IMG/VR virus record: IMGVR_UViG_3300026512_000002
Span: 1-64,000 of that record
Strand: one strand, 5' to 3'
Length of the DNA: 64,000 bases
Numbering within the stretch: position 1 is the stretch's first letter; each line of letters starts with the position of its first letter. Shown here piece after piece: positions 13,726 through 52,259 of the stretch. Below the pieces are notes generated by a model. It ran no database searches. It was not told the DNA's origin and saw nothing but the letters and a program-made list of their open reading frames with translations. Position numbers and translations under genes: made by a program.

Positions 13726-13765
13726 AATCGTAATATTGATGATCATAAATATATATTATAATAAT

Positions 13766-14112
13766 AAGTTATTTAATAATGAATCGTGCATTGGCAAGTG
13801 TTTCCGGCGGTTCATAGCATAGAATGCTACTTATAGGAAACAACACACATTTGTGTGTTCCATTGTAAAGTTGTAGCTCTGGTAGGAAGGAGCAGTGAGC
13901 GGACATTGTGTGTCGAAACATGTCGCGGCTCTTGGTAGAAATACCAGCGGTAATCAATCCGTCAGAACACGTAAACATGGCTGACTACCATGATTGCTGG
14001 AGTTGCTATCCTAAAAGCAACTCTTGAGTAAATATATACAACCCTATCTGCGTTTGCGATAGGGTTGTATATCATTAAGAAAAGAGGTTGATCCCCTCTT
14101 TTCTTTTTTTTT
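13766..14112 (+). ncRNA. Putative structured early ncRNA (~350 nt)
   Basis: TATATTAT at 13752; GC-enriched; helices include a perfect 15-bp stem 14034-14048/14058-14072; terminator AAGAAAAGAGG/CCTCTTTTCTT plus T-tract. Confidence 0.65.
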
Positions 14113-14219
14113 GATTATGGACGACATATGTTGAAATCATTTTCAATTATATATTATAGTAATAGTTAATGTGTTTATCATACAATATGGTATGATATAA
14201 TATTTATATTGGAGGAAAT

Positions 14220-14924
14220 ATGCGACAAGAAGTAGAATTAACATTAGAAGATGGTACAGTATATGGTACCTTTTCGTATGAAAAAAAATTGGACATTAGC
14301 GATGATAATATGTTCAATAATGTGAAAATTGGATCAATAACCGTATTATACGGTTATGATTTAATACCAACGAAAATACCTACATATACAATACCTATAT
14401 GTAAGGCAAACTCCAAACATTTTAATGATGAACTATTGGGGTTTAGAGAACAACTTAAGAAAAAGTTGGAAACGTGTGTCTATTATTCAGCCAAATTTGT
14501 ATTTACAACATTTGAGGATCTACAAGTTGGATATATGTGTGGAACAGCCAGTTATGATGTTGATCATGCAAATCAAGTGTTATCGTATACAGAAAATTGG
14601 ACTCATGGTGAGTTTTTAGAAAAATGCGGCGATGACAGTATACAGATGTACGCGCCAAGATCAAATTGGGGTATGGTTATACGTTATCCATCAACATCTT
14701 GTGATAAATATAGTAGTAAAAGATATGTGTTATTTGAAGCTATTGGCTTTATAACAGGTCTAGATAAGAAAGACTATGAATTAAAATGGCATATCGCAAC
14801 TAATATATTTACACTATCATCACCTACCTCTAAAAAAGGTAGGTTGATAGGAAAACGTGGAAGAACGATTATGAAAATCGAACATGTTGCTAAATATCTA
14901 AATGTTAAAATAATACTTAGATAA
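14220..14924 (+). CDS. Protein with C-terminal KH (RNA-binding) domain
   Basis: KGRLIGKRGRTIMKI GxxG-loop KH signature; SD GGAGG; TATATTAT at 14150. Confidence 0.7.
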   Translation: MRQEVELTLEDGTVYGTFSYEKKLDISDDNMFNNVKIGSITVLYGYDLIPTKIPTYTIPICKANSKHFNDELLGFREQLKKKLETCVYYSAKFVFTTFEDLQVGYMCGTASYDVDHANQVLSYTENWTHGEFLEKCGDDSIQMYAPRSNWGMVIRYPSTSCDKYSSKRYVLFEAIGFITGLDKKDYELKWHIATNIFTLSSPTSKKGRLIGKRGRTIMKIEHVAKYLNVKIILR

Positions 14925-14931
14925 TTATAAC

Positions 14932-14958
14932 TATGGGATCGAAAGATCCCATTTTTTT
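14932..14958 (+). terminator. Intrinsic terminator, copy 1 of a 27-bp direct repeat
   Basis: TATGGGATC-GAAA-GATCCCATTTTTTT, identical to 17665-17691. Confidence 0.85.
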
Positions 14959-14970
14959 TAAAGAGGACAA

Positions 14971-16476
14971 ATGAAATTATACGAAGAATTACAACGAATA
15001 GAGAATCGGGTAAATTTTACAGAACACGATATAGACCCAGTATGGGTTAATTTTATTAGGAAGTCATTTGGTGACAAATATGAAATTAAAACTGATTATA
15101 AAAGTGATGGGTTTTTATTTGATGTTGAGCGTGATATGTATATTGTTATTATGGAATTTAAACGTGATAAATTATTAGGTAAAAATAATATTGATTTAAA
15201 CGAAGTAATAGTTCAAGTTATTTATTATTTAAAGAAAGTTGAGAAGGATGGTAAAATTTTACCGAAGGTTGTTTTAATTGGAGATGTTAACGAAGTTGTT
15301 ATTTTTCCAACATATACAATCGAAAAATATTTGAGAATGGAGAATGTTGATTGGAATATCGCAGCTAGTGAAGCATATAAAAGTAATCGCGATATGTTGG
15401 ATATGTTAAAGGACGATGTACATGTTAAGTTTAAAGTTGAAAACGTGGATGTTTCTTTTAACGAGGAAAAATTCATCAATAATTTAAAAAGAATGGTTTA
15501 TGATTCGTTTTCTAAAATAAAGATTACTAAAATTAATATTGGAGAAGTATTTGTGAATCATATTAAAGGGTTGTTTGTTGACGCGAATGACTCGACTATA
15601 TTCAATTTCTTGCAGATAATGAAAGGTAATTATGCTCTTGCGATTAAGAAAAGGAATAAAAGTAAATATGTATTATATATAGAAGATGGTAATGTTGTTC
15701 AAGTGAATAGGGATAAATATGCTATATTGGAGAATACGTTTGAGCTCAATATGAGTAATCGTGAGTTTAAAGAAATGTTGCGAAATAAGGACGAGTTCGA
15801 AGATAGTGTTAAAAGAGTGAAAGAAGGGATTTTCTATACACCGTTACCGTTTGTGGATTTAGCACATCAATATATTGAAAAGGAATTTGGTAAAAATTGG
15901 AAAAGCGAATATTCTGTATATGATCCTGCGTGGGGAATGGGGAACTTAACTAGGGATTATGTATTTGATGACTTATATTGTTCAACATTGGATGGGGACG
16001 ACTTAAAATTAGCGAAGAATTTCAACAAGGGATCTAGGAAATTCCAGATGGACTTTTTGAACGATGATTTGCCAGAATTTATGGTGGAAGCTTTTAAAGA
16101 TAAAAGTAAGAAGTGGATTGTGTTTATGAATCCGCCGTATAAAAATGGTCCGTCTGGAATAAATCATAATAATGGAGTTGGATTTAATGTTAGTAAAACT
16201 AGTAATAAATTAGATATGAAAAAAGATGGAGTTAATGGTAATGACTTATATGTTCAATTTATATATAAAGCTATTAAGTTAAGATCCGAATATGGTGCAG
16301 ATCTAACCATATGCGTTTTTAGTAAAGCAACATATTTGAATGGTAAAGAAGGGAAAGGTTTAAGAAAATATTTAAGAAATAACAATGTTGAGTTTAAATG
16401 TGGATTTTTAGTAACTGGAAAGGTATTCAAGGGACTTGATGCTAAATGGCCAGTTAGTTTTACAATTTTAAAATAA
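14971..16476 (+). CDS. Type IIG-like fused PD-(D/E)xK endonuclease / N6-adenine DNA methyltransferase
   Basis: N-terminal SDG..(x12)..EFK..QVIYY; GIFYTP (motif X), YDPAWGMGNL (motif I), DFL, NPPY (motif IV), DLYVQF. Confidence 0.85.
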   Translation: MKLYEELQRIENRVNFTEHDIDPVWVNFIRKSFGDKYEIKTDYKSDGFLFDVERDMYIVIMEFKRDKLLGKNNIDLNEVIVQVIYYLKKVEKDGKILPKVVLIGDVNEVVIFPTYTIEKYLRMENVDWNIAASEAYKSNRDMLDMLKDDVHVKFKVENVDVSFNEEKFINNLKRMVYDSFSKIKITKINIGEVFVNHIKGLFVDANDSTIFNFLQIMKGNYALAIKKRNKSKYVLYIEDGNVVQVNRDKYAILENTFELNMSNREFKEMLRNKDEFEDSVKRVKEGIFYTPLPFVDLAHQYIEKEFGKNWKSEYSVYDPAWGMGNLTRDYVFDDLYCSTLDGDDLKLAKNFNKGSRKFQMDFLNDDLPEFMVEAFKDKSKKWIVFMNPPYKNGPSGINHNNGVGFNVSKTSNKLDMKKDGVNGNDLYVQFIYKAIKLRSEYGADLTICVFSKATYLNGKEGKGLRKYLRNNNVEFKCGFLVTGKVFKGLDAKWPVSFTILK

Positions 16477-16636
16477 TAGGAGTGATAAAATGAACATACT
16501 AGTTGAGTAAATTAATATATGTAGCGATGATATTAAAATGGGTATATTTGTAAATAATGATAACTATACTGAATTGTTGACTAATAAACATTGTATAAGG
16601 TTAACAATACATCAGTGGTTAGTAATAGGAGAAATA

Positions 16637-17659
16637 ATGGATAATTTTAATAACTTTAAATTTGATGTTTATGATGTAGATGCAAAATTAATTGGGGATG
16701 TTATATTGTATAATATGGATGATGAAATCTCACTAACAGATTGGTTGAAAGATGTTAGAAGTGAAAACAAAACAACTAAAGGGTTATGTGTTAAATCACC
16801 ATTGAGAACATCATATAGTGAACGAGGAACCATGGTAGATAAAGCATTAGGATATTTATTAAATGCTGGAAATAACATGGAGAAATCAGCTAGAAGTGTT
16901 GGTTTGATGAGTATAGCATTTTCCAATGCACATGGAGAATCTATTGAATCTACTAACCTTAAGCGAGCATTTTTAACTATGGCTTTCCGTAGAAGCTATG
17001 CAAAACATCAATGGTTTGAAGAGAAGAAGGAATTTATCGCACCAACTTTCAAGTCCAAACAACATCAACAACAAGTTTATACCGATGCTATCATCTTTTC
17101 CATTTTCAACAACCAAAACCAAACAGGTTCGCTCCGCGACATCAAATACGACAATAAAACCTTTCAAGTGGAAAACCACTTCTTTCCTTTTAGCAAGAAA
17201 ATAGTTCAATCTTTAATAGATTTATATATTGATGAAGATGATAGGTTTGACCTAATAGAAGAAGATATGAATCGCTATGGTCGTAAAGATAGAATCATGA
17301 ATAGAATAATCGAAAGATATTTGCGTTCCGATTCATTTAGTGAAGAAGCGTTAGATGTTTACAATAAAGCATTGTCAATGTATAAGAATGCGTTTAAGTA
17401 TTTTGTAGATGAAGAATATCAAGAAAAGGATGTGAACGGAACATTATGTACAACTTATTTAAACGAAGTATGGGACACATCATGGTATCAGATGAAGATT
17501 GTTATAGAAAACCGATTTAAAGATGATTATAAGGAGTTTAAGAATCTCTATAATAAATTAGAGAAACGAATGAGGCAACATGTTATTGATTGTGGAGTTA
17601 TAATTCCTAATGAAGGTGAAAAATATTATGATTTTGAAACCAATATGGTGATTGAGTAA
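16637..17659 (+). CDS. Probable specificity/C-terminal half of the split Type IIG-like enzyme
   Basis: SD AGGAG before ATG 16637. Sequence continues the pattern expected after WPVSFTI (FDVYD..., DWL, NHFFPF, WD..WYQ). Confidence 0.6.
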   Translation: MDNFNNFKFDVYDVDAKLIGDVILYNMDDEISLTDWLKDVRSENKTTKGLCVKSPLRTSYSERGTMVDKALGYLLNAGNNMEKSARSVGLMSIAFSNAHGESIESTNLKRAFLTMAFRRSYAKHQWFEEKKEFIAPTFKSKQHQQQVYTDAIIFSIFNNQNQTGSLRDIKYDNKTFQVENHFFPFSKKIVQSLIDLYIDEDDRFDLIEEDMNRYGRKDRIMNRIIERYLRSDSFSEEALDVYNKALSMYKNAFKYFVDEEYQEKDVNGTLCTTYLNEVWDTSWYQMKIVIENRFKDDYKEFKNLYNKLEKRMRQHVIDCGVIIPNEGEKYYDFETNMVIE

Positions 17660-17664
17660 TTGAT

Positions 17665-17691
17665 TATGGGATCGAAAGATCCCATTTTTTT
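17665..17691 (+). terminator. Intrinsic terminator, copy 2 of the 27-bp direct repeat
   Basis: Identical to 14932-14958. Confidence 0.85.
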
Positions 17692-17911
17692 AAATAAGAT
17701 ATCACGTGTTATTGAGATACGAACATGTGATAAGAGTAAACATGTTCAATAGTACTATAAAATCTGATCATGGTTACGATGAAGTATCTTTTTATTAATA
17801 ATATGACTGGAAATAGTTTGAATAAAGATAAAATTGTTGAAGTAATAAAAACAGTTTTTTATTTATAGTTGTTTATATAGTATATGTTATAATAATTGTA
17901 ATTGGAGTTAT

Positions 17912-18235
17912 ATGATTAAAGAAGTCTACAGTAATGCAATTTTCTGTTCAAATATTGAAAATTGTGAAAACAGAGAGTGTGTGTTTAGGTTTAATGGTTA
18001 TAGAAAAGAAGTAGACCAAATACATGATATTGATAACTATGTGATAAAATTAGATAATTTAAAATCTAATGATTGTGGTTTTATAATGCCAAATCTTATG
18101 TGTGATATTAACCATGATGGTTCTATAACAGTATCTGATATTGTTGGCAATATGCGAGTTGTAGAAACGTATTATGGGTATGATAAACAAGAATGTATGA
18201 TTTTGTTTAGCAGAGAGCATTGTATGGGTGAGTAG
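17912..18235 (+). CDS. Cys-rich hypothetical protein
   Basis: SD GGAG; FC-x4-C-x4-C-x-R pattern. Confidence 0.7.
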   Translation: MIKEVYSNAIFCSNIENCENRECVFRFNGYRKEVDQIHDIDNYVIKLDNLKSNDCGFIMPNLMCDINHDGSITVSDIVGNMRVVETYYGYDKQECMILFSREHCMGE

Positions 18236-18328
18236 TGATTAATATATTTAATGTGGTAAAAATGAAAATTCTTTACTAGATGTTACAAAATAGTAGTAAA
18301 ATGATTAATGAATACATATTATAGTTGT

Positions 18329-18672
18329 GTCTGTAGGTTATAATACCATAACTTATGGATAATGGAACCGTTTGCGTGTTCCTCAGCTGTCAAGCTGTCT
18401 TCAATAGGAGGAGATATGAAGAATTTATAGATTAGCGATTCCGGTGGTGAATCGTTAATAAGCTTGAGGTTTGATAATACCTCGTAAAAAAAATATCCGT
18501 ACACTAGGGTGCGGTTCCCTAGAAATTGTTGGTTAAGTGTAAGCGCATACATTTGACCACTTTTCCAATCAGCCAATAGGCATGTGTGTTCTAATATACA
18601 CAGCCTAGCATCTTGCGGTTGATTGTAGAAAAAAGAGAGGTTCTGATGCTACCGTAGTTCTCTTTTTTTTTA
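18329..18672 (+). ncRNA. Putative structured early ncRNA (~345 nt)
   Basis: CATATTAT-N6-G (18315-18329); serial hairpins with G-U pairs on the + strand (TTAGCGATTC/GAATCGTTAA; TGGTTAAGTGTA/TACATTTGACCA); T-tract end; no long ORF. Confidence 0.65.
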
Positions 18673-18936
18673 TTAAATAACTAGTTATTTGCTGCAGATA
18701 ATGCTAAAATTGATATATTGTAACATATTATGTTGAAATATTAAGAATATTGCTGACGCGATAATATGATGATAATATAGTGGATTGTAAATCTGTTAAT
18801 CGTAGATTGCTGATAGTGAAAATTGAAGTAAAAATTAAATGTATATTATGAAGGTGTAGTTGTTATATAAACAAATAATGAATATTGTATATATTACTCT
18901 CTCATTATTTATGTTATTTTTTTATTAGGAGGAAAT

Positions 18937-19293
18937 ATGAAAATTTTAGAACTCAAAACTTTAGATACAGCAACAACACAAGATTTTGATAAAGTGAAAA
19001 ATAACTTATATCAGAGATATATGGTTATTGATTCAAAGTTAAATAGAATTTTAGATATTTATATTGGTTATCGAGGTAGTTATACAATGGTTGTTTTGCA
19101 AGGATCAACTTCAACAGAGTCATTTTCAGGAGTATCAGTTAGTAGGAATGGTTATTTATCATATTGTTTACTAAGTGCCTTTAAAAAGGCTGGTTTTAAA
19201 TTCGATAACTATGATTATGGGGAAGAAACGCGTAGTATTATAGAACTTGTAGCCAAAAAAATAACTAGAAAAAAATTCAAAATATTTTGTTAA
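18937..19293 (+). CDS. Hypothetical early protein
   Basis: SD AGGAGG; TATATTAT-N6-G at 18842. Confidence 0.75.
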   Translation: MKILELKTLDTATTQDFDKVKNNLYQRYMVIDSKLNRILDIYIGYRGSYTMVVLQGSTSTESFSGVSVSRNGYLSYCLLSAFKKAGFKFDNYDYGEETRSIIELVAKKITRKKFKIFC

Positions 19294-19342
19294 GGAGCTA
19301 ATAGTCAGGTTCCTATAATCGTATATATATGTATTACATATA

Positions 19343-19357
19343 TATATTATACTATTG
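19343..19357 (+). promoter_or_regulatory. Early (virion-RNAP-type) promoter YATATTAN-N6-G
   Basis: TATATTAT-actatt-G. The same motif with G at +7 occurs at 18315, 18842, 22395(-), 28699, 29516, ~43317, 51179 and ~62530. Confidence 0.65.
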
Positions 19358-20237
19358 TATGGCGGAAATATTTTACGAAACGTCAATACTATGGGAAAGC
19401 GTATCCCTAAAAAAAACAGGCCGCACTGGCGTACCAGGAACACCAAGTAGAGATCTTGGTCAACAAAAAAATCCGTTTGGCCAACGAAAATGATCCATGT
19501 TGTCTGGGAGTATTAGTATGCTCCATTGAAGGACAGTCTCTGGTGATAATGGCAAAAGGTCGAAAGGCCTGGAAAGAAGACGAAATTCGTAACAATGTCT
19601 AAGATAATGGCATTGGGGTATAAAGGGCGGTGGCCTGGAAGTCCTACGATATAAGTCTTTTTTACATAGGTGTATCTTTGATATATTTATGTAACGCTTT
19701 TTCCGTTCAAATGATGAGAAAAGCTATGCTTAATGGCGAAAGCCAAAAAGTAAGCTTTAAGATCATCAATATTGATCGGGTGAAGCAACTCCTACATAAT
19801 AATGATTGGACAAGTGCCATTGGGCACGAAGATGTCGCAATCATTGTTTCTAAAGAATTGGGAATGGAGGTTAAACATAACCGAATTTCCCATTCTTTAG
19901 AAAAGGAGGATGTCTTGATTTTAAGGCAGTATTTCGGAGGGCGTTTGCCCGAAGGAACTACTACCTTAAATGAAGATCAGCTCAAGTTATTGAGCTGGGT
20001 AGAAATTACTCTTAGCAAGTAATTTCTATTTATCCTTCTAAGCTAACAGTTTAATTCGGTTTGACTAACCGAAGTATATTGTTAGTAGGAGTGGAAACAA
20101 AAAAACCTAATAGGTCGGCCAGGTAGGAATGGCCGTTGACTAGACATAGTCTTAAAGAGAGTTAGTCACTCTCAATATTCCGATCCATCAAAAAAAAACA
20201 CCACCCGTTCTGGGTGGTGTTACTAATCCTTTTTTTT
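19357..20237 (+). other. Highly structured early transcript enclosing acrIII-1 (~320-nt 5' and ~200-nt 3' folded regions)
   Basis: Early promoter, continuous helices, 5'/3' end pairing (19359-19372 with 20174-20188), terminator AACACCACCC/GGGTGGTGTT. Confidence 0.7.
19678..20022 (+). CDS. acrIII-1: AcrIII-1 viral ring nuclease (DUF1874; degrades cA4, anti-type III CRISPR)
   Basis: MIYLCNAFSVQM, SAIGH (catalytic His), NRI, LEKED and GGRLPEG match the SIRV1 gp29/STIV B116 family; TTG start after AGGTG. Confidence 0.9.
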   Translation: MIYLCNAFSVQMMRKAMLNGESQKVSFKIINIDRVKQLLHNNDWTSAIGHEDVAIIVSKELGMEVKHNRISHSLEKEDVLILRQYFGGRLPEGTTTLNEDQLKLLSWVEITLSK

Positions 20238-20276
20238 ATCATTAAACAATCTATTAATACATTATATAGGATTAAT

Positions 20277-21398
20277 ATGGAATTTGTAAAAGGCAATATA
20301 GAAATAAGTGATTTACCTACAGGTTTATCAGATGAGATATTGAGTAAAATAGATACTATTATTAAAATAAATGATAGTATTAAAGGTTTTATATGCTCCA
20401 CTGAACCAATACCTATCTTTGTGGGGTATAAGAATTTTGGTTTACCATCAGGTTGTTTTGAAGAATATTGTAAAAAACTTAATTTAAAAACAATGGTTAT
20501 TGAGTATAATGGTGAGCGTATATTTATAGATATTAGATCAAAATTATTTGTAGATACAGTAAATGGTGATTCTATACAACCATATGTTGATTATGATCTA
20601 AATCCTGATATAATAAATATATCTACAAATACTGTTGGTAACATCACCATTTATGGTGAATGTTTTGATAGTAATATGGGTGTTATTATTGATGATGTGT
20701 TAGATGTGGTTAATATAGTATGTGATAAACCAAATGAAATAATATTGACATATAATACATATGACGATGTTGGTGAAACGGTGATAGAACTTGTACGGGG
20801 AAGTACTAGATCTTTTGGTAAAAAAATAAAAGTAAAAATATCGGATATTGTCAAAGGTAGTGGCCAACCTGGTGTTTTTTTAACAAATTTTGAAAATTGT
20901 AAAAATGGTGAGAATTTATGGGGTGTTGAATGGGATACAAAAGTATTTGGTAAAATATCTTCAGTTGAATCATTTTTTAAATCATCAAAAGCTGGTACGC
21001 CTAGTGTTGGTACAGGTCCTAATGATGTAAATGTTTTTACTAACAGTAAATGTTATATGTACACTGAGCGTAGTGGTGAAAATTATAATAGTGGTCAATA
21101 TGCTACTGTTACTACTAATAATTTTGCTATATTAGATGAGGTAACCTTTGAATACCATCTAGCTACTAATAATACCAATGTTGAAGTGTTTTTAAGAGCA
21201 TATAATGTCAAAACCATGAATTGGGACATTTTATGGTCACATTCTGGACCTGGTGTTCATAAACAAAATGATAAAGCAAGTTTGATAGAAATAAAAAATA
21301 TAAATAATAATTATAATATGCTTCAATTTTATTTTGGAGAGACTAATAATTGGGGTGGTGATCTAGCATTAAGTAATATTAAAATAGTGTCTAAATAA
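20277..21398 (+). CDS. Virion protein with IPT-like and C-terminal MAM-like domain
   Basis: TPSVGTGP...YMYTERS and GDLALSNI MAM-like motifs; late promoter at 20245; paralogue of 24397..25527. Confidence 0.65.
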   Translation: MEFVKGNIEISDLPTGLSDEILSKIDTIIKINDSIKGFICSTEPIPIFVGYKNFGLPSGCFEEYCKKLNLKTMVIEYNGERIFIDIRSKLFVDTVNGDSIQPYVDYDLNPDIINISTNTVGNITIYGECFDSNMGVIIDDVLDVVNIVCDKPNEIILTYNTYDDVGETVIELVRGSTRSFGKKIKVKISDIVKGSGQPGVFLTNFENCKNGENLWGVEWDTKVFGKISSVESFFKSSKAGTPSVGTGPNDVNVFTNSKCYMYTERSGENYNSGQYATVTTNNFAILDEVTFEYHLATNNTNVEVFLRAYNVKTMNWDILWSHSGPGVHKQNDKASLIEIKNINNNYNMLQFYFGETNNWGGDLALSNIKIVSK

Positions 21399-21525
21399 GA
21401 GATTTTTTTGTAATAGTTTTGGTTAAACATATTGATGATAAATATGTTGTTTGGATAGATGAGAACGTATAATCTTTAATCGTTCCAATATCTGATTTAG
21501 ATGTGTTAGTAAAAGAAGAAATGTT

Positions 21526-21800
21526 GTAAATATACAAAATAAAGAGGGTAAAATTCCTTTACATACAGTTATTCAAGATAGTCGATCTGAAATGGTAAAA
21601 CTGCTTATTAGAAATGGAGTAGACTTAAATACTCAAGATAATGAAGGTAAAATTCTTTTATATTTAGTTATAAAGGAAAGATAGTTTGAAGTAGTTAAAG
21701 TGCTTATTAAAAATGGTGTAGATATAGTTATACAAGATGATGAAGACAAAACCTTTTTGCATATGGATATAAGAGAAATGTAATTCAAAATGGTAATTTT
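21526..21800 (+). pseudogene. Ankyrin-repeat gene remnant
   Basis: VNIQNKEGKIPLHTVI...MVKLLIRNGVDLNTQDNEGKILLY...R*FEVVKVLIKNGVDIVIQDDEDKTFLH...* ; in-frame TAG and TAA, no start codon. Confidence 0.85.
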
Positions 21801-22071
21801 TTTTTAATCAAAAAGGTGTAATCATAAAGAAAAGAAATAAAAAGAAAATATTTTTTAAGAGCGTCTTCGATTAATAAATATCACACATATTATAAAGAAA
21901 CATACATTATTAAAATAATTATACTTTTACTGGTAAATCTTTATAAGAGTTTGAATATTCTTTAGAATCTTTGCTTTTTTTATTAATAAATCTATTTTAT
22001 TATGATTTAAACAATTTCTATTTTTAGTAAATTCTTGTCTGATAATATACTTATTAATTAACTATGATCCT

Positions 22072-22381
22072 AAAAAAAACATCTTACCATATCACATTAT
22101 GTCTAGGTGACATAACATGACTTAGGTTTTTTAGAATAAGAGATTGCTCTCTCGCGGATGATCGATGTTTAGCATCCGTCATGGTTCCTACACCATATTC
22201 TTACATGTTCGACAATTTAAAGGATCATTATGTCAGATGATCCTACCTTTATTGGTTTGCCTTAAGTTGGTTAGACTCAACGTGACTCTAGCTACAATGC
22301 TTATTTCACCCTTTCGGGTAGATATCACGATTAACCCATTACCAATGGGTTTATATTATAGGATAAATAATATACCCTATC
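22072..22381 (-). ncRNA. Putative structured early ncRNA (~310 nt)
   Basis: Minus-strand TATATTAT-N6-G (G at 22381); hairpins ACCCATT/AATGGGT, ACCC-GAAA-GGGT, GGATCAT/ATGATCC, GAGA-GCAA-TCTC; U-tract end. Confidence 0.7.
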
Positions 22382-22473
22382 AATGATATAATATATGTTT
22401 GAATGTATTATATATACGATTTTTTTATTTACTATATTAAACAATTTATTAATGAAACTATGAGGTGTATGAA

Positions 22474-23454
22474 ATGGAAAAGTATAAAGGTTTGGTAATA
22501 GAAGGCGGTGGTGCCAGAGGTATTGTTTATGGTGGAGCATTACAGGCTATGGGAAAAAAAGGTGTATTGGGAAATATAATACATTATATGGGGACATCTG
22601 TAGGATCGATAACCGCATTGATGTTGGTATTGGGATATACTCCTCAAGAAATTGTTATTAAAACGGTTAATTTGCGAAGTGATGATATATTGAAAAAAGA
22701 TTTTTTTTTCTATATAAACGATGCTAAGAACTCGGAAAATGTTTTTAGTATTGCTAAATATATCATGTTAGGGTTAACCATAGGTTTATTTAGGGTTCCT
22801 GTGAATTTAATACATTTATTTTTTTTTGAAAATGGTTATTATGATAATGCTCCGTTGCGAAAATGGATTGAGAAATTGTTAGTCGATAAAGGTTTCGATA
22901 AAGATACTTCATTTAAAACAATATGGGAAAAAACTGGAAAAAAATTATATATTACAACAACTAATTGGGACCGAGAATATGTTAGAGTTTTTAGTGTTGA
23001 TGATGACAATGTCTCTGTATTAGATGCTGTTATGATCAGTGTATCTATACCCTATTTTTTTAGATCTGTAAATATAGGCGGTGAAAGATATGTTGACGGT
23101 GGTTTAGTGGCTAATTATAATATAGATTATTTATCTGATAATAATATTATAAATGCTAAGGATATAATAGGTTTACGTGTTGATGATAAATCTGAAATAG
23201 CTGGATTCAATGAAGGAAAATTATTTAAAGTTAAAAAGAAAAAAAAGAATTTTTTACAAAGTTTAATTAATACTATAGATATCATGTATGCTGGTGCCAA
23301 TACTCCTACATTGAGAGGAAAACATGAGCAAACAACAATACGATTATCTGATCACGGTATAGGGGTTGTTGATTTTTCAATGAATAAAGAAAAAAAACTA
23401 TATTATAGTGATTTGGGATATATTGATTTTTCAAACAAATATAAACATCAATAA
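22474..23454 (+). CDS. Patatin-like phospholipase
   Basis: GGGARG oxyanion loop, GTSVG nucleophile elbow, SVSIP, DGG catalytic Asp. Confidence 0.92.
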   Translation: MEKYKGLVIEGGGARGIVYGGALQAMGKKGVLGNIIHYMGTSVGSITALMLVLGYTPQEIVIKTVNLRSDDILKKDFFFYINDAKNSENVFSIAKYIMLGLTIGLFRVPVNLIHLFFFENGYYDNAPLRKWIEKLLVDKGFDKDTSFKTIWEKTGKKLYITTTNWDREYVRVFSVDDDNVSVLDAVMISVSIPYFFRSVNIGGERYVDGGLVANYNIDYLSDNNIINAKDIIGLRVDDKSEIAGFNEGKLFKVKKKKKNFLQSLINTIDIMYAGANTPTLRGKHEQTTIRLSDHGIGVVDFSMNKEKKLYYSDLGYIDFSNKYKHQ

Positions 23455-23467
23455 ATAGAGGACAAAT

Positions 23468-24388
23468 ATGAATGAATTACAGAAAGATGAGCTTAAAGTA
23501 TTGGAAACTAGTTTTAGAGAATTAAAAGAGTCCGTATTGGACAATATAAACCCAACATTACTATCTCGTGAATTAGGTTTTATGAATCCAATTGCAATAA
23601 ATATAAAACAGTGGTCTATGGATCTATATCTATATTATATTAATAAGAAAAAAGATATTTTAGATAATCCTGATAGTGAAATAGATATAAATTTTGATGA
23701 AGTTGGGATGTTGCAATATGATAATGATGATTTAGTTAAAAGTATAAGTTCGGTATCTATGTATAAAATTGCTAATTATATTGATAAACCTTTTACTGAT
23801 ATTAAAATAAATCAAGTTGATTTTAAAAGAGATTTGAAAGCTGATATTGTTTTAAACAAAAAAGTGACAAGGAGTGCTAATGGTAGACCTATTAAATCAG
23901 AATATTTTCTTGTTGATGAATTAATGGCAGTAATATACTTTGATTTTAAAACAGATTCGTCTAATCTAATAGTTGAGAGAACAGAAACATTATATTATAT
24001 TAAAAAGGATAATACTAAAGGAACTCCTATCATAATTAAACAAAAAAAATATGATCTAACCAATCCGACTGATGCAGCATTAGCTATTAAGGAACGTGTT
24101 AATAGTAGAAAATTTATTACAGAAGCTATAATGGTTTTTATAAATGGGGTACTACAGCAATATCATCCTGACAAAACACAGTACCAAATAATTTTAATGA
24201 CGCTATCATATTGGAATTATTCTGAAAAAACTAGATTAGATTTTATAAATTTAGGATTAGAATATTGGGAAGATGATTTGAGAAATATGGTGTCGCCAGC
24301 ACCAGATGACTATGCATGGTTAGATTATACTATAGATGATAACGGTACTAGTGTTAAAGATTATATGATAGCAATGTTGTCATATTAA
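23468..24388 (+). CDS. Hypothetical late (probably tail-associated) protein
   Basis: 306-aa ORF with SD GAGG in the late operon. Confidence 0.7.
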   Translation: MNELQKDELKVLETSFRELKESVLDNINPTLLSRELGFMNPIAINIKQWSMDLYLYYINKKKDILDNPDSEIDINFDEVGMLQYDNDDLVKSISSVSMYKIANYIDKPFTDIKINQVDFKRDLKADIVLNKKVTRSANGRPIKSEYFLVDELMAVIYFDFKTDSSNLIVERTETLYYIKKDNTKGTPIIIKQKKYDLTNPTDAALAIKERVNSRKFITEAIMVFINGVLQQYHPDKTQYQIILMTLSYWNYSEKTRLDFINLGLEYWEDDLRNMVSPAPDDYAWLDYTIDDNGTSVKDYMIAMLSY

Positions 24389-24396
24389 GGGGGTTT

Positions 24397-25527
24397 ATGA
24401 AATTTATTGATTTTACATTAAATGATGATAGTTTATTAGAAATAAATGATAAGCACTATTATGCTGATGTTAATGTTAAGGTGACTGATGATTTTGATAA
24501 TACATTATGCTATATAATTGTCAATACTATACCTATTGTATTAAATGATATTAATGTTGGTGATGTAAACGTTTACAATATTATAAATGAATATTTATAC
24601 GCTTATAATATTAACGTTGTCGGTATATATATTGTATACAAAGATGTTAGTAAATATGTGTTGAATAATAATATGATAAATGTTAATGGTGCTGATAAAT
24701 ATCGTTTACAATATATTAAACCATTCATATATAATGATACTAATATTAAATTACCAAAAAAAACAACTGCTGATATAACTATAACTGGTGGTAATTTTGA
24801 TGATAGTATGATTTTTAAAATAGATGATGTTATTATTAATAGTTTTAATATAATATCAGATTCAACCATTATTATAAATGTAACAACTCCAGATACTGCA
24901 ATTGGTGTTAGAGAGCTTACTATAAGTAGAGCTGGTATGGTAGCTTTTGGCGGATCTATTAATTTGGAAATAATTGATAATGTTATTGGTGATGGTCCTA
25001 GTGGTGAGTTTTTAACTGATTTTAATATGAATACAAGTGGTGGTGATCTATGGGGAAGTTCTTGGGTGTTGGAGACTTTTGGAGGTGCTAGTAATATCGA
25101 TGGGTTTTTTAAATCATCTAATGTTGGAACACCATCTGGTAAGACTGGTCCTAATAGTAAAAATGTATTCAGTTATTATAATGATAGATATATGTTTACT
25201 GAACGTTCGTCTGAAAATTTTGGAACTGGTAAATATGCTATCGCAACTACTAATTACTTTAGTGACTTAACTAAAATTGAATTAGAGTATCATCGGTATG
25301 GTAGTAGTATGGCTGATTTTATTATAGAGTGTCGCGATAGTTTTGGATCCTGGATTGAGAAATATAGATTATCTGGACAACAACAGAGTAAAAATAATGA
25401 TGTTGGAACATATGTGTCTATCGATACTACATTATGGGATTGTGATATGGTTAGATTTGTTTTCGGTGAAGCTAGTAATTATGATTCGGATATGGCTATT
25501 AGTTTTATTAAATTAACATCCGTCTAA
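24397..25527 (+). CDS. Virion protein with IPT/TIG and MAM-like domains
   Basis: ITITGGNF IPT pattern; TPSGKTGP...YMFTERS; FEYHRYG-like LEYHRYG; SDMAISFI. Confidence 0.65.
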   Translation: MKFIDFTLNDDSLLEINDKHYYADVNVKVTDDFDNTLCYIIVNTIPIVLNDINVGDVNVYNIINEYLYAYNINVVGIYIVYKDVSKYVLNNNMINVNGADKYRLQYIKPFIYNDTNIKLPKKTTADITITGGNFDDSMIFKIDDVIINSFNIISDSTIIINVTTPDTAIGVRELTISRAGMVAFGGSINLEIIDNVIGDGPSGEFLTDFNMNTSGGDLWGSSWVLETFGGASNIDGFFKSSNVGTPSGKTGPNSKNVFSYYNDRYMFTERSSENFGTGKYAIATTNYFSDLTKIELEYHRYGSSMADFIIECRDSFGSWIEKYRLSGQQQSKNNDVGTYVSIDTTLWDCDMVRFVFGEASNYDSDMAISFIKLTSV

Positions 25528-25617
25528 ATAATTTATAACTAATATTGTTTGAATATTAAATTAATAATGACCCATTATTTTAGCAACAACTAAATAAGCA
25601 ATATAGTAGAGTGAGAT

Positions 25618-25824
25618 ATGAATGAAGTTGAGATAAAAAGTTTAAGTTTAGCAGCATACATTATGACTAGTGGAGTCAAACTTATTAAGATTAATGATAA
25701 TAGAACATATATTCTTAATACAGACAGAAGTGAAGATGAGTGGATGTTGGAATATGTTTCTTCTAAATGTAGTGAATTTGATAGAAACATTATGAATCTA
25801 AAATGGTTCATGAAAAAAAAATAA
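25618..25824 (+). CDS. Small DUF5659-like protein
   Basis: SLSLAAYIMTSGVKL pattern; late promoter at 25585. Confidence 0.55.
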   Translation: MNEVEIKSLSLAAYIMTSGVKLIKINDNRTYILNTDRSEDEWMLEYVSSKCSEFDRNIMNLKWFMKKK

Positions 25825-25846
25825 TATTAATTTTTAGAGGTAAATT

Positions 25847-27625: not shown

Positions 27626-27657
27626 TAAACAGTCTAAAGTAATACATATATAGAATT

Positions 27658-27687
27658 AAGGGTGGTGTTATATCACCCTTTTTTTTA
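27658..27687 (+). terminator. Intrinsic terminator
   Basis: AAGGGTGGT/ATCACCCTT plus T-tract. Confidence 0.75.
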
Positions 27688-27858
27688 CAACTCCTTATAA
27701 TGATTGATTATAGTTCACTAATCATATTTATTATTAATATTATTTAAATTAATATAACTCATCTTCATATTATATATAATATGTTGTAAAAAAAAGGAAT
27801 TTAAATATGTTAAATTCCTTTAATGTGCAACATATATCACATCCTATCATTTTATAAA

Positions 27859-28131
27859 TTAACCATAATAAATAGTTTCAATATTATAGCTAATGCATGG
27901 CACATCAATCACCATGTTAATCCAATTATTTTTTAGTATGTTATTATATTTAAAATATATAAAATTAAGATGTTTTTCTGTTTTAAAAATAATATTGTCG
28001 TATCGATCCAATATTGTATATTGGGATATTTCATCTAGTATTGTTGTTTTACGGCTTGGTACTTTGACCAATTTTAAGAACTCTGTTTTTTTAATAATGT
28101 ACATAGATTTCCTATTTCTGATTTGGAACAT
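27859..28131 (-). CDS. Hypothetical protein
   Basis: 90-aa ORF overlapping the end of the upstream gene. Confidence 0.5.
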   Translation of the reverse strand: MFQIRNRKSMYIIKKTEFLKLVKVPSRKTTILDEISQYTILDRYDNIIFKTEKHLNFIYFKYNNILKNNWINMVIDVPCISYNIETIYYG

Positions 28132-28441
28132 AGTATTCTATGTAATCGGCACCATCTGTGATAGCAGTGTTTGCAATATCTAATATGGTAGATATATCGT
28201 CATCATTATCATAAACCTTAAACAGCGTAGATTCATGTGATAATAATCTGAATATACCGATTTGGTATCCAGTGTCTCCATATATTGAAACTCTAACTAA
28301 TTCGCCATCTTTATCACTATATCTAAATTCTAATATATTTGAATATTCGAGTGTGAATTTATCAAATAACATTGCTAATTCTTCATCGTTTATATATGCG
28401 ATAGACATCATTTCCATTGTATTGATTATTTCATTTCTCAT
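28112..28441 (-). CDS. Hypothetical acidic protein
   Basis: SD GGAGG; 109 aa. Confidence 0.75.
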   Translation of the reverse strand: MRNEIINTMEMMSIAYINDEELAMLFDKFTLEYSNILEFRYSDKDGELVRVSIYGDTGYQIGIFRLLSHESTLFKVYDNDDDISTILDIANTAITDGADYIEYYVPNQK

Positions 28442-28706
28442 TTTCCCTCCGTTAAAAAAGATTTATTTGTAACTATATGTTATCAATCATATTAATTAGT
28501 CACATATATGTAACTTGGCAAGTTTACATTGTCATACTAAATGTCTCCCACAATATATGTAGAGGTTATCAGTTTGTAAAAATTTATTATAGTTTGTTAA
28601 TGAATATGATACATGATTATAGAAATAATATGTAATTAATTAATATATAAAATTATACTATCATTAGTCTATAATAGCATAATAGCTATATTTAAACATA
28701 TATTAA

Positions 28707-29373: not shown

Positions 29374-29591
29374 TATTATATATAATAAAAATTGTATGGT
29401 AAAATATTTTATAATAGCATGGAATTAGATAAAAAACATACAAATCTCTAAAGTACAAATATTAGGATTGTGTAAAGAATATTGTTGAAAATCGTAATAG
29501 TTTAATGTTCGATTACATATTAGTTATATGATTGTAATTGTGCAATCAACGTGCGAGCGTTACTCGTTGAATTTTTTTTAAAGGAGGAATT

Positions 29592-49570: not shown

Positions 49571-49594
49571 TGTTTATTATTTTAAGGAGTATAT

Positions 49595-50095: not shown

Positions 50096-50195
50096 TCTGA
50101 TGATTAAAATCAGTATACTTTATTATAACTATATTTATATTCTGTTTCATAAATTAAAATATAATTTAAATACATATTATGTTGGTAACAATCAT

Positions 50196-50606
50196 CTATT
50201 GCGTTTTATAATACTTGGTTGTTTTTGAATTATTACGTTCATTATAGTATTTATTGTAATTTTCAATACTTTTAGAAATAGTTTTGAATTTAGCTAGTAC
50301 ACTTATAATATCAAAACCTATATCAGTAAATCTATCATAATCACACAATATGTATATTTTTTTCAGATCATTGCATTTAACATGGTATTTTTTAGCTATA
50401 CCACATTTCATACTACCTACAATAGTTTTAGTGAGTTCTGTTATTATTTTTTTTTCATCATCAGTTAATTTGGGCAATCTAGTTAAATTAGGTATATCTT
50501 CTTTAAGATATATGTTTTTATAAACAGTTTTTTCAACAATTTTTGGTTTGCAACATGCTGAAGACATTAACAATATACCTGTAATAGTTACGAATATTTT
50601 AAACAT
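50196..50606 (-). CDS. Lipoprotein, o-spanin candidate
   Basis: MFKIFVTITGILLMSSA|C lipobox; start overlaps the stop of the upstream gene (TAATG). Confidence 0.6.
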   Translation of the reverse strand: MFKIFVTITGILLMSSACCKPKIVEKTVYKNIYLKEDIPNLTRLPKLTDDEKKIITELTKTIVGSMKCGIAKKYHVKCNDLKKIYILCDYDRFTDIGFDIISVLAKFKTISKSIENYNKYYNERNNSKTTKYYKTQ

Positions 50607-50959
50607 TAACAATCTCCTTTTTCACAATCTTCTATTCGTTTACTCATAGCTTCTGAAAAACGATATCTAGCTTCAACAACGCTATCGTCACCAGTATCAA
50701 TATTGTCAGATATTGTTCTATTCACAGCAGCAACTTTAGTGTTCTGATGTATTAGAAGTAGTGTTGTTTTAATATTTTCGTTATTAACACTCATTAAGCG
50801 TTTATTTGAATCAACTAATTGTATTATACGGTTTTCTAATTTAGCTATTTCCTTATTTTTTTTCTTATATTTTAAATATAAACGCACTAATCCTAACAGT
50901 GTTATTAATGCAACAATATATTTTCCCCAAGTGTATATTTTTCTTATCATATTAAACAT
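50606..50959 (-). CDS. i-spanin candidate
   Basis: Single N-terminal TM helix, coiled coil, C-terminal Cys; directly upstream of the lipoprotein. Confidence 0.6.
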   Translation of the reverse strand: MFNMIRKIYTWGKYIVALITLLGLVRLYLKYKKKNKEIAKLENRIIQLVDSNKRLMSVNNENIKTTLLLIHQNTKVAAVNRTISDNIDTGDDSVVEARYRFSEAMSKRIEDCEKGDC

Positions 50960-50971
50960 GTTGTCTCCTAT

Positions 50972-51109
50972 TTATCCATTTAAAATAGCTTTATCTGTTT
51001 TTTTGTTTTTCTTATCCTCTTCAGAACATTCTTTAAGATAATCTTCTAATATTAAATTGTTATCGTGTAAAACTTTAATATCTTGGTTATTCTTTTTTTG
51101 ATTACTCAT
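50972..51109 (-). CDS. 45-aa charged protein, absent from the ORF track
   Basis: SD AAGGAG; MSNQKKNNQDIKVLHDNNLILEDYLKECSEEDKKTKKTDKAILNG. Confidence 0.65.
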   Translation of the reverse strand: MSNQKKNNQDIKVLHDNNLILEDYLKECSEEDKKNKKTDKAILNG

Positions 51110-51192
51110 AATATACTCCTTTATGAAATTTATAATATTGTCATTGTTATTGTTAAGTATATAGAATTATTTTAAATATATATTAATTAAAT

Positions 51193-52259
51193 GTTGGATA
51201 TTAGTAATGTTCATAGATTTCTCTATGAAGCATTATCTAGGCGATGTATGCTGCAGAGGGTGAAACCTCTTACGCTATCAATGTCGTTGAACATGATGTG
51301 GATAAGGAATTTATCATAACACAAAGTATCTGACCGTCAAGGAAATGACGTTAACACCCGCTAGGATAGCGTAAAGCCTATGGCTGTAAACGGTAACTGC
51401 CGCAGCAAGTCAGACCTAGTTGGTTATTGGCGTAACATATTCATCGAATATATTTGAATATGTTTATAGTTAGACACACATGAAGTGTGTATTATTGATA
51501 TGAAGACATCCCCATGTTTCCACAAATGGTGAGGTGTGTATACTTGAGATAATATGTATGGAATGGAATATGTTGAGTTATGTTTTGCTTGATATGTTCA
51601 TGTGTTAAACTATGAATATGTTCGTATATAGTATGAATATTGTTATTAGAAGGACAACTATAAACCCGTTCACGGTTGTAACGTGTAATCGTTCTACTTA
51701 TGTTTTGGTAGATACGAAGGTGTGAGAAAAGTAGGATATAAACTACTTCACCAACTCCAGATAATAATGGGGGGACATGCGGTCTTAAAACGTATCGGTT
51801 ATTTCAAATAACCGGGTTGGTAACCTAAAACCTGGCTAGCCGAAGCCAATGTATAAATGAAACTATCATATATTGTGTTATGATAGTGGATTATGGTAGG
51901 ATTGGGCACCCTTGAGTATTTTCGGATACTCTTAATTGTCTATGGTCATAAAAACAGGTCGAACATGCGACATGACCATGATGCTCTAACAAAGCATCAA
52001 GGCGGTTTTCATAACGCCATGTTTTATCCTCAGAAAATCGAGGGGACGGTGGTCCTTAAACATTTGACCAAGTCATTGGTCAAAGTATAAGTGAAGTTGT
52101 TGCTGGCGAGTAATGATTGATCAAATGGCAGGATTGGACATCCTTGAGTATTTTCGGATACTCTTAATTGTCTATGGTATGGGGTGCTAGTCAGGAGTAT
52201 TTGACTAACCATGGTGTTTCGCAAAACATCAAGACAATATGTCGAGCCCCCTTTTTTTT
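51193..52259 (+). ncRNA. Very large structured early ncRNA (~1.07 kb) with a duplicated 54-nt module
   Basis: TATATTAA-N6-G (51179-51193); no convincing ORF; GAAA and UUCG hairpins; repeat 51893-51946 vs 52125-52178; GGGG..CCCC plus T-tract end. Confidence 0.75.

Follow-up and report, generated by a model that had tools for sequence, protein, structure and literature searches.

The genome of an uncultured AR9-like jumbo phage contains at least eight small stand-alone transcription units, positioned behind early-type promoters, whose RNAs are predicted to be far more tightly folded than the rest of the genome. Half of the units encode small proteins, including a homologue of an anti-CRISPR ring nuclease, and half encode nothing; what the folding is for has not been shown. 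The analysed window comprises the first 64 kb (positions 1 to 64,000) of the 227.7-kb contig of an orphan AR9/PBS1-like phage, IMG/VR record IMGVR_UViG_3300026512_000002. Seven of the units, named u1 to u7, are located in the window, and an eighth, L019, is located elsewhere in the same genome.

All seven units match the experimentally defined early promoter consensus of phage AR9, AAATATATATTAT-6N-G(+1) (PMC5312081), which is recognized by the virion RNA polymerase, with 10-13 of 13 positions identical. The predicted transcription start six nucleotides downstream of the motif is G in six of the seven units and A in u1; the start sites were not mapped. The shorter motif YATATTAN, which the earlier note gave for the units, is not specific, since it occurs 185 times in the window. 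Six of the units in the window, as well as L019, share an upstream box, AWAATMGYA, positioned exactly 19 nt before the core promoter. The combination of box and core occurs six times in the 64 kb, only at units, and L019 was identified as an independent hit of this pattern outside the window. The phage encodes a multisubunit RNA polymerase beta' homologue (52273-53499, minus strand), which matches phrog_2962 and PF05000 and is 35% identical to the beta' of AR9.

Positions of the hyper-folded units of the phage and of their parts within the 64-kb window.
Feature	Position	Strand	Description
u1 promoter	13724-13759	+	upstream box AAAATCGTA (13724-13732), 19 nt, core TATATTAT (13752-13759); predicted +1 at 13766 (A)
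u1	13766-14112	+	347-nt non-coding folded RNA; about 10 hairpins inside a closing helix; canonical terminator (14077-14112); GGUAGGAA loop at 13881-13888
u2 promoter	18287-18322	+	box AAAATAGTA, 19 nt, CATATTAT; +1 G at 18329
u2	18329-18672	+	344-nt non-coding RNA; 13-bp hairpin starting at +1; AGGAGG RBS followed by only a 4-codon mini-ORF
u3 promoter	19315-19350	+	box ATAATCGTA, 19 nt, TATATTAT; +1 G at 19357
u3	19357-20237	+	881-nt transcript of 5'UTR (z -2.0), AcrIII-1 ORF (z -10.9) and 3'UTR (z -5.7; GGUAGGAA loop at 20122-20129); terminator hairpin 20197-20221, 8 nt before U8
u3 ORF	19678-20022	+	AcrIII-1/DUF1874 ring-nuclease homologue, 114 aa, probable TTG start; SD AGGUG and start codon in a 15-bp hairpin
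u4 promoter	22388-22423	-	box AAAATCGTA (22423-22415), 19 nt, TATATTAT; +1 G at 22381
u4	22072-22381	-	310-nt non-coding RNA; hairpin from +2; UGUAGGAA loop at 22192-22185
u5 promoter	28671-28706	+	box ATAATAGCA, 19 nt, TATATTAA; +1 G at 28713
u5	28713-29373	+	661-nt folded transcript (z -8.3 to -8.6)
u5 ORF	28964-29179	+	71-aa CxxC...CxxC zinc-ribbon-like orphan protein; same start called independently in the protein library
u6 promoter	29488-29523	+	box AAAATCGTA, 19 nt, CATATTAG; +1 G at 29530
u6	29530-29744	+	215-nt transcript (z -10.3); two 5' hairpins; strong RBS; 40-aa ORF (29592-29714) running through two near-perfect 13-14-bp hairpins; canonical terminator (29720-29744)
u7 promoter	51174-51186	+	AAATATATATTAA, 12 of 13 matches to the AR9 early consensus; no upstream box; +1 G at 51193
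u7	51193-52259	+	1067-nt non-coding RNA; no ORF over 65 aa in any frame; 3' half with two diverged ~230-nt repeats
u7 module, copy A	51893-51946	+	conserved 54-nt module; UUCG-capped 7-bp hairpin inside a symmetric internal loop
u7 module, copy B	52125-52178	+	conserved 54-nt module; 94% identical to copy A, flanks diverged

The units are enriched in GC (33-40%, compared to 29.1% for the window). Comparison with dinucleotide-shuffled controls, which the earlier note had put forward as a test that could overturn its observation, showed that the units fold far better than the controls, with z-scores of -7.4 for u1, -5.95 for u2, -13.3 for u3, -4.4 for u4, -8.3 for u5, and -10.3 for u6, and of -4.9 and -5.5 for the two halves of u7. 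In a 120-nt scan of the whole window, the units hold 5% of the windows, but 18 of the 19 with a minimum free energy (MFE) of -35 kcal/mol or lower, and 10 of the 10 with -40 kcal/mol or lower. The median probability that a 16-mer is unpaired is about 20-fold lower in the units than in neighbouring genes. Helices of the units contain 91 internal G·U compared to 4 A·C pairs on the promoter-defined sense strand, and 32 compared to 23 on the antisense strand, which indicates that selection acts on the RNA. However, the G·U excess could be inflated by the G>C skew of the coding strand and by the energy model, and the z-scores are nearly as negative for the antisense strand of u1, the u3 ORF, u5, and u6. 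Most other early-type genes of the same phage are not folded, so folding is not a general requirement of early transcripts.

The transcripts usually begin with a hairpin at +1 to +4, and each of the seven units in the window ends in a run of 8-10 U. A canonical hairpin followed by a U-run is called only for u1 and u6. In u3, u4, and u7 the last hairpin is located 8-15 nt from the U-run, so that read-through is possible, for example from u3 into 20277-21398, and in u2 and u5 the stem is weak; these 3' ends do not settle whether every unit has an intrinsic terminator. GNRA loops occur in u1, u3, u4, and u6, and a UUCG loop in u7, together accounting for 8 of 31 tetraloops, whereas none is present in the MFE folds of u2 or u5. 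Three units (u1, u3, and u4) share an NGUAGGAA hairpin loop, which sits on three different stems. There is no sequence similarity among the units.

A search of the window with Rfam covariance models, another of the checks named in advance, returned no family at gathering score, and only chance-level hits were obtained at E <= 1 (13000-30500) and at E <= 10 (50900-52400). The families considered were tRNA, tmRNA, RNase P, SRP, 6S, riboswitches, group I and II introns, GOLLD, ROOL, OLE, and raiA; ARAGORN detected no tRNA or tmRNA. No tandem repeats next to a toxin gene, as in ToxI-like type III toxin-antitoxin RNAs, are formed by the units, since none of them contains tandem repeats. The peptides encoded by u5, u6, and L019 are polar or charged, without a hydrophobic helix on inspection, and no antisense promoter was found, which does not fit type I toxin mRNAs.

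Units u1, u2, u4, and u7 are non-coding in every frame, and pieces of the units match no protein family. The protein encoded by u3 is a true AcrIII-1 by sequence: it matches PF08960 with an E-value of 1.2e-12 and a score of 48.2 bits against a cut-off of 26, and hits the structures 2j6b, 2x4i, 6scf, and 2j85. It aligns over nearly its full length with SIRV1 gp29, AFV3-109, and the THSA-485A DUF1874 protein, has the same length of 114 aa, and retains the NAFS, IGH (conserved histidine), and RLPEG motifs. Cleavage of cyclic tetra-adenylate and inhibition of type III CRISPR were not assayed. The identity to the homologues compared from cultured viruses is only 31-38%. The codons of the u3, u5, and u6 ORFs lie inside helices, and synonymous-codon shuffles gave z-scores of -5.6 to -8.6 for these ORFs, compared to +1.2 to -2.8 for 11 control genes. 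The value of -8.6 belongs to the AcrIII-1 ORF, whereas the corresponding gene of SIRV1 is not folded (z +0.3) and that of THSA-485A only a little (z -2.6). The extreme folding of u3 is in the ORF and 3'UTR, not in the 5'UTR.

Similar hyper-folded cassettes occur in a few related uncultured phages. L019, the eighth unit of the phage itself, has a z-score of -15 and encodes a 73-aa orphan protein. In another AR9-like contig (locus L080), the same promoter type drives a second AcrIII-1 homologue, whose unit is also hyper-folded (unit z -7.7, ORF synonymous z -4.3). Further hyper-folded small-ORF cassettes of related phages are L054 (z -13.2), L025 (z -10.3), and L082 (z -6.9). However, no homologues of the unit RNAs exist in IMG/VR, JGI metagenomes, GTDB genomes, or the 150 loci that were retrieved, and covariation, which had been listed beforehand as a criterion, could therefore not be evaluated. 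The only evidence of this kind is at the level of paralogues: a G·U to A-U change between the two u7 modules, and one compensatory pair between the leaders of u6 and L019.

The observation of the earlier note, seven stand-alone units with an early-type promoter, a GC-enriched hairpin-rich body, a terminator, and no resemblance to known RNAs, three of them with ORFs inside helices, is confirmed, except that a canonical terminator is called only for u1 and u6, and with corrections to the promoter and loops described above and to the start of u5, which had been placed at 28707. Its interpretation, that the units are immediate-early RNAs acting as nuclease-proof mRNA scaffolds, decoys for defence RNases or Cas proteins, or ligand sponges, is supported only in part. 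The panel of folded units, the promoter type, the AcrIII-1 identity, and the absence of known RNA families are supported. In contrast, "immediate-early" rests on promoter similarity only, as the phage is uncultured and no RNA data are available on early, protein synthesis-independent transcription. The units are not one class of RNA, because four of the eight are mRNAs of small proteins. Nothing that was tested shows a decoy, sponge, or any other RNA-level counter-defence activity, and the only link to defence is a protein, AcrIII-1.

The explanation that we favour, tentatively and at slightly less than even likelihood, is that the units are autonomous early expression cassettes, in which the RNA itself, and not only any protein it encodes, has been selected for very dense secondary structure on the transcribed strand. 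Four cassettes are mRNAs for small accessory proteins (an AcrIII-1 cA4 ring nuclease, a zinc-ribbon protein, and the 40-aa and 73-aa orphans), and four are non-coding RNAs of 0.3-1.07 kb. In this working model, the folding makes the earliest accessory transcripts long-lived and poorly accessible. The 5' hairpin and 3' terminator would block exonucleases, whereas near-complete pairing would hide the body from single-strand-specific endoribonucleases, either host RNases or cOA-activated Csm6/Csx1-type collateral RNases, and from RNA-guided recognition by type III or type VI CRISPR. The non-coding members would be stable structured RNAs that probably bind a common partner through the shared NGUAGGAA loops. 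The architecture, the excess of structure, the strand-specific RNA-level signature, the coding status of each unit, and the AcrIII-1 identity were demonstrated by the analysis, whereas early timing, stability, evasion of nucleases or guides, and any binding partner are deduced; no transcript, half-life, or defence phenotype has been measured, and neither the host nor its possession of type III CRISPR is known. The burial of the SD and TTG start of u3 in a hairpin fits throttled or regulated translation better than fast production of the Acr.

An unlikely but more far-reaching possibility is that a lineage of AR9-like jumbo phages uses RNA hyper-folding itself as a layer of immune evasion. A dedicated promoter subclass, formed by the upstream box and early core, would launch at the moment of injection a regulon of nuclease-proof and guide-inaccessible transcripts, some of which would deliver anti-defence proteins such as AcrIII-1 even while collateral RNases are active. 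Others (u1, u2, u4, and the 1-kb u7) would be stand-alone structured RNAs titrating a common host or defence factor through shared loops such as NGUAGGAA.

It is also possible, although unlikely, that the non-coding units are dedicated RNA effectors, as proposed by the earlier note in its strong form, acting as decoys for defence RNases or Cas proteins, mimics of guide or target RNAs, or aptamer-like sponges for signalling nucleotides, with the folding as functional architecture rather than armour. The four units keep strong structure without coding in any frame, the NGUAGGAA loops are shared, u7 contains a module preserved in two otherwise diverged repeats, and the units are co-regulated with an AcrIII-1 gene under the same promoter subclass. 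However, they are not similar to any riboswitch, aptamer, or known RNA family, homologues and covariation are lacking, and the structures are mostly strings of long, near-perfect hairpins rather than ornate junction-rich folds. The same hyper-folding affects true protein-coding sequence, so structure alone does not imply an RNA effector.

Two further explanations are less likely still, both to a similar degree. The structure may be mainly a translational or timing device, in which helices sequester ribosome-binding sites and slow ribosomes, so that potent small proteins are made in small amounts or only after a trigger such as processing, temperature, or a helicase, and the non-coding units are regulatory leaders or processed by-products. 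The buried start of u3, the position of the u6 RBS in an A/U helix, the mini-ORF of u2, and a conserved leader hairpin directly upstream of the RBS in related phages, with covarying stems and a conserved GUCCA loop, are in agreement with this. However, it explains neither units of 0.3-1.07 kb with no ORF at all nor folding spread along whole ORFs and 3'UTRs, and several cassettes (u6, L019) have exposed strong RBSs. Alternatively, the non-coding units may be degenerate members of a family of mobile early-gene cassettes that have lost their ORFs, in which the promoter, 5' hairpin, internal hairpins, and terminator persist as a chassis and the panel reflects cassette turnover, not a function of the RNAs. 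Unit u2 keeps a perfect RBS and ATG followed by a stop after 4 codons, phages of sample 3300035505 have cassettes with shared leader and terminator modules around unrelated ORFs, as expected for modular exchange, and u6 and L019 share a leader design. Nevertheless, the structure of u1, u2, u4, and u7 is intact (z -4.9 to -7.4), with 50 G·U compared to 0 A·C inside helices, which argues for ongoing selection, and a clearly decayed gene in the same region, the ankyrin fragments at 21430-22070, is AT-rich and unfolded. A DNA-level signal, in which inverted repeats serve as protein-binding sites, replication or recombination elements, or cruciforms and the RNA folding is incidental, is very unlikely, because although many stems are perfect Watson-Crick palindromes and antisense z-scores are similarly negative, also for the 3' half of u7, the G·U to A·C asymmetry is strand-specific, the sense MFE is always lower, each unit is framed by a promoter and U-run in the matching orientation, including u4 on the opposite strand, and no repeated DNA motif is shared by the stems.

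Phage non-coding RNAs, stabilizing hairpins, and AcrIII-1 are each known, but we know of no description of a co-regulated set of early cassettes in which whole transcripts are selected for extreme structure, including the synonymous sites of a true anti-CRISPR gene. If the folding protects transcripts from RNases or RNA-guided immunity, it would be a new, sequence-independent layer of counter-defence, and would help to explain how phages exposed to RNA-targeting CRISPR can still express their first genes. The units also provide four orphan structured RNAs, one of 1 kb, and a conserved bipartite early promoter for a wide clade of uncultured AR9-like phages.

Unit u7 resembles GOLLD and ROOL, large structured phage or prophage RNAs of unknown function, in being phage-borne, roughly 1 kb long, non-coding, and highly structured with internal repeated modules. 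However, it does not match their Rfam models even at E <= 10, and its predicted fold is dominated by long simple hairpins. RNA-based anti-CRISPRs (Racrs) are small phage RNAs that mimic CRISPR repeats. The units are likewise phage-encoded RNAs, in part non-coding, proposed to act against CRISPR next to an Acr gene; they are 0.3-1 kb long, not solitary repeat-like hairpins, and repeat mimicry was not examined because the repeats of the host are not known. Stabilizing hairpins are found in phage early mRNAs and as 5' stabilizers of Firmicute mRNAs (T7 RNase III sites, SP82 early RNA, and ermC, aprE, and cryIIIA STAB-SD); the relation of the units to these was not tested. The units share with these a hairpin at the very 5' end, a 3' terminal hairpin, and SD-like purine tracts in untranslated RNA (AGGAGG of u2 and the GGUAGGAA loops), but their structure covers whole transcripts, including coding sequence, and whole units have no ORF.

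AcrIII-1 belongs to the DUF1874/STIV B116-like viral ring nucleases (SIRV1 gp29, PDB 6SCF and 2X4I), and is here carried by a jumbo phage under an AR9-type early promoter. Like Bacillus phages AR9 and PBS1, the phage has monocistronic small early genes in addition to multisubunit RNA polymerase subunits and the shared promoter consensus. However, the early leaders of AR9 are short and unstructured, and its small early genes fold no better than shuffled sequences (z +1.0 and +0.4). The first 50 kb of AR9 contain no hyper-folded cassette and no 120-nt window of -40 kcal/mol or lower. Two AR9 early promoters, those of g047 and g048, even have an AAACGTAT-like element at a distance similar to that of the upstream box.

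The sequence analysed covers bases 4-64003 of IMGVR_UViG_3300026512_000002 (Ga0256842_1000004), a contig of 227,696 bp. The window encodes a fragment of a split multisubunit RNA polymerase (RNAP) beta' subunit that matches phrog_2962 and PF05000 and is 35-37% identical to those of AR9, PBS1, and the staphylococcal jumbo phages. The window also carries large virion proteins, a ribonucleotide reductase whose large subunit is interrupted by an intein, a dUTPase, and a thymidine kinase. It is therefore an AR9-like jumbo phage. The presence of the dUTPase and thymidine kinase suggests thymine-containing DNA, unlike the uracil DNA of AR9 and PBS1. The GC content of the window is 29.1%. The phage belongs to an orphan lineage. 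The closest beta' among 5.8 billion proteins is 44% identical, and several of its proteins have no homologue at all.

The seven folded transcription units, u1-u7, are positioned where the earlier note had placed them, and the observation that it made is real and strong. The octamer YATATTAN, which the note had put forward as the shared promoter motif, is not informative on its own, since it occurs 185 times in the window. However, every unit matches, at 10-13 of 13 positions, the longer early-promoter consensus mapped by dRNA-seq in AR9, AAATATATATTAT-(6N)-G+1 (PMC5312081), and G is located at the predicted start in six of the seven. The bodies of the units have a GC content of 33-40%. Each unit ends in U8-U10; the terminator is canonical in u1 and u6 and looser in the others. 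The units share no alignable sequence: blastn and nhmmer comparisons of the units with each other and with about 150 fetched loci found nothing.

Folding no better than that of shuffled sequences had been named in advance as grounds for dismissing the units, but they fold far better than dinucleotide-preserving shuffles. The z-scores are -7.4, -5.95, -13.3, -4.4, -8.3, and -10.3 for u1 to u6, respectively, and -4.9 and -5.5 for the two halves of u7. In a scan of both strands in 120-nt windows, the units occupy 58 of 1066 windows, but contain 18 of the 19 windows with a minimum free energy (MFE) <= -35 kcal/mol and all 10 with MFE <= -40. In contrast, the first 50 kb of AR9 contains one and none, respectively, and hyper-folding as a general trait of AR9 is rejected for that region. 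Thermophily was considered as the cause of the GC-rich structured islands and rejected, because the IVYWREL fraction of the proteome is 0.372, lower than that of mesophilic AR9. The comparison with known RNA families, likewise proposed beforehand, returned no tRNA, tmRNA, or Rfam match, even at permissive E-values.

Features of the window and of related loci. Positions are those of the window unless a locus is named.
Position	Strand	Feature
1-2000		Stretch with extreme GC skew (+0.5 to +0.7)
876-1946	+	Protein made of about 13 MORN-like repeats (YENG..G.W motif), within the skewed stretch
1021-1200	+	Strongly folding spot
4035-7037	+	Ribonucleotide reductase large subunit interrupted by an intein
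7890-8528 and 11069-11686	+ and -	dUTPase and thymidine kinase
13881-13888		Hairpin loop NGUAGGAA in u1
14220-14924	+	Orphan 234-aa protein just downstream of u1
14933-14952 and 17666-17685		Identical GAAA-capped terminator hairpins after two different early genes
19678-20022		u3 ORF, probable TTG start, AcrIII-1/DUF1874, 114 aa
20122-20129		Hairpin loop NGUAGGAA in u3
20214-21398		Protein without homologues
21430-22070	+	Decayed ankyrin-repeat gene
22185-22192	-	Hairpin loop NGUAGGAA in u4
22465-23454	+	Patatin-like phospholipase (PF01734, E 6e-37), divergent from u4 in the early region
28964-29179		u5 ORF, CxxC...CxxC protein, 71 aa
38458-38555		Perfect 33-nt tandem repeat, three copies, between two minus-strand structural genes
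52273-53499	-	Split multisubunit RNAP beta' fragment
L019:764-1226		Eighth cassette, on the same contig but outside the window
L019:868-1089		Cys-rich orphan ORF of the eighth cassette, 73 aa
L156:301-633		Hydrogenobaculum phage 1 gp18, AcrIII-1 homologue

The strand on which structure is selected was examined first by comparing z-scores. However, z-scores are often as negative on the antisense strand, as expected for Watson-Crick hairpins, and their strand asymmetry was not decisive as proof of RNA-level selection. The imperfections of the helices were counted instead. Inside the predicted helices of the eight units, the promoter-defined strand has 91 internal G·U pairs against 4 A·C mismatches, whereas the antisense folds have 32 against 23. 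G·U is tolerated only in RNA and only on one strand. The coding strand is G-rich and the energy model favours G·U, but neither plausibly gives a ratio of 23:1. The counts are therefore strong evidence for selection on the transcripts in the orientation predicted by the promoters, including that of the minus-strand unit u4.

Units u1, u2, u4, and u7 have TAA, TAG, and TGA stop codons scattered through all three frames, which argues against an alternative genetic code. No ORF in them has a usable ribosome-binding site (RBS) beyond a 4-codon mini-ORF in u2, and neither their ORF pieces nor their antisense ORFs match any Pfam or PHROG family. The possibility that the loci are decayed protein genes had been identified from the outset as one that would undermine the RNA interpretation. 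A truly decayed gene nearby, an ankyrin-repeat gene with a 99-nt period repeated 2.2 times that survives only as ORF fragments of 27-30 aa, is AT-rich and unfolded. The units are therefore not simply decaying genes.

The remaining three units of the window carry ORFs. The ORF of u3 encodes a clear AcrIII-1/DUF1874 protein, which matches PF08960 at E 1e-12 and aligns with SIRV1 gp29 (2X4I, 6SCF), AFV3-109, and the THSA-485A protein, with the NAFS, IGH, and RLPEG motifs kept. The ORF of u5 was called independently in the protein library, and u6 encodes a 40-aa ORF behind AAAGGAGG-N6-ATG. Shuffling synonymous codons among identical amino acids destroys much of the structure, with z-scores of -8.6, -6.9, and -5.6 for the ORFs of u3, u5, and u6, and -7.5 for the eighth unit. 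Comparison with ordinary phage genes, another control envisaged at the start, gave +1.2 to -2.8 for eleven genes of the window. In u3 the extreme folding is located in the ORF (z -10.9) and the 3'UTR (z -5.7), whereas the 5'UTR is ordinary (z -2.0). The Shine-Dalgarno sequence and start codon of u3 are positioned in a 15-bp hairpin.

Six of the seven units carry an upstream box AWAATMGYA exactly 19 nt before the core promoter, and the combined pattern occurs six times in the window and nowhere else. Since the box was derived from these units, the real test is an independent one. A scan of IMG/VR with the strict pattern returned a fourth site on this contig, outside the window (locus L019), which is an eighth cassette with the box promoter, a hairpin at +1, a strong RBS, the orphan ORF, a terminator, and a z-score of -15. 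The rest of the 227-kb genome was not surveyed beyond such pattern hits. The same bipartite promoter is present in dozens of other AT-rich viral contigs, several of which encode AR9-like beta' or DUF7487 homologues, and it is therefore a clade-wide early promoter.

In the other contigs the promoter mostly drives ordinary genes, with z-scores near 0 to -3, and the use of the upstream box as a marker of folded units in all phages is rejected. A minority of its units are hyper-folded small-ORF cassettes: the IMG/VR loci L054 (-13.2), L025 (-10.3), L093 (-8.0), L080 (-7.7), L124 (-7.4), and L082 (-6.9). The L080 ORF, in a related AR9-like phage, is again an AcrIII-1 homologue, 38% identical and above the PF08960 threshold. 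Loci L025, L054, L082, and L110, from related AR9-like phages of IMG/VR sample 3300035505, share a 5' leader and a terminator module around unrelated small ORFs. Their leader hairpin has covarying stems and a conserved GUCCA loop just upstream of the RBS.

Three units, u1, u3, and u4, present the same 8-nt loop, NGUAGGAA, on different, unrelated stems. GGTAGGAA occurs only twice in the 128 kb of both strands of the window. The unit u7 contains two diverged repeats of ~230 nt, each of which keeps a 54-nt module at 94% identity, with a UUCG-capped hairpin. Every unit pairs from +1 to +4, and the predicted accessibility of 16-mers is about 20-fold lower than in neighbouring genes.

A search for close relatives, in which covariation of the helices was to be examined as the note had suggested, found none. 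A megablast search against phages gave no match, and scans of IMG/VR, JGI metagenomes, and GTDB with the u7 module found only the source contig. The protein at 20214-21398, the L019 ORF, and the u5 ORF have no homologues. The contigs that carry the nearest beta' have no unit at the syntenic position. Covariance-model searches with single-sequence models were not attempted, given the lack of homologues.

The note had proposed that the phage deploys folded RNAs at the start of infection as an RNA-level counter-defence, and this interpretation is partly supported. The analysis demonstrates a co-marked set of autonomous cassettes whose RNAs, coding or not, are under strand-specific selection for dense structure. 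The weakness of the finding is the complete lack of homologues and of expression data. That the cassettes are transcribed first, by the injected RNAP, is inferred from promoter homology alone. It is also an inference that the structure serves persistence and inaccessibility. In this view, the 5' and 3' hairpins would act against exonucleases, and the paired body would act against single-strand endoribonucleases and against base-pairing by guide RNAs. The recurrence of AcrIII-1 in such cassettes in two phages points to type III CRISPR, with its cOA-activated collateral RNases, as one relevant pressure. This model is favoured only tentatively. A small control set of AcrIII-1 genes is mixed: that of Hydrogenobaculum phage 1, a phage with a cultured host, also shows strong synonymous-site structure (z -6.2), although no control genes were run for that phage, whereas that of THSA-485A is only mildly folded (z -2.6) and SIRV1 gp29 is not folded (z +0.3). 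The Hydrogenobaculum phage result hints that folded acrIII-1 mRNAs may be more widespread.

Four other explanations remain. The non-coding units could be dedicated RNA decoys or sponges, the structure could serve translational throttling, or the non-coding units could be degenerate mobile cassettes. DNA-level palindromes are the least likely explanation, given the G·U and A·C counts.

The promoter and the AcrIII-1 protein are members of known families, whereas the RNAs are not members of any. AR9 itself lacks such units in the 50 kb examined. The nearest analogies are the stabilising hairpins of phage early mRNAs, Firmicute 5' stabilisers, large orphan phage RNAs such as GOLLD and ROOL, and RNA anti-CRISPRs, and none of these covers whole-transcript hyper-folding of a promoter-defined gene set. 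The orphan protein encoded just downstream of u1 has sub-threshold KH-domain (RNA-binding) hits at its C-terminus (E about 0.002).
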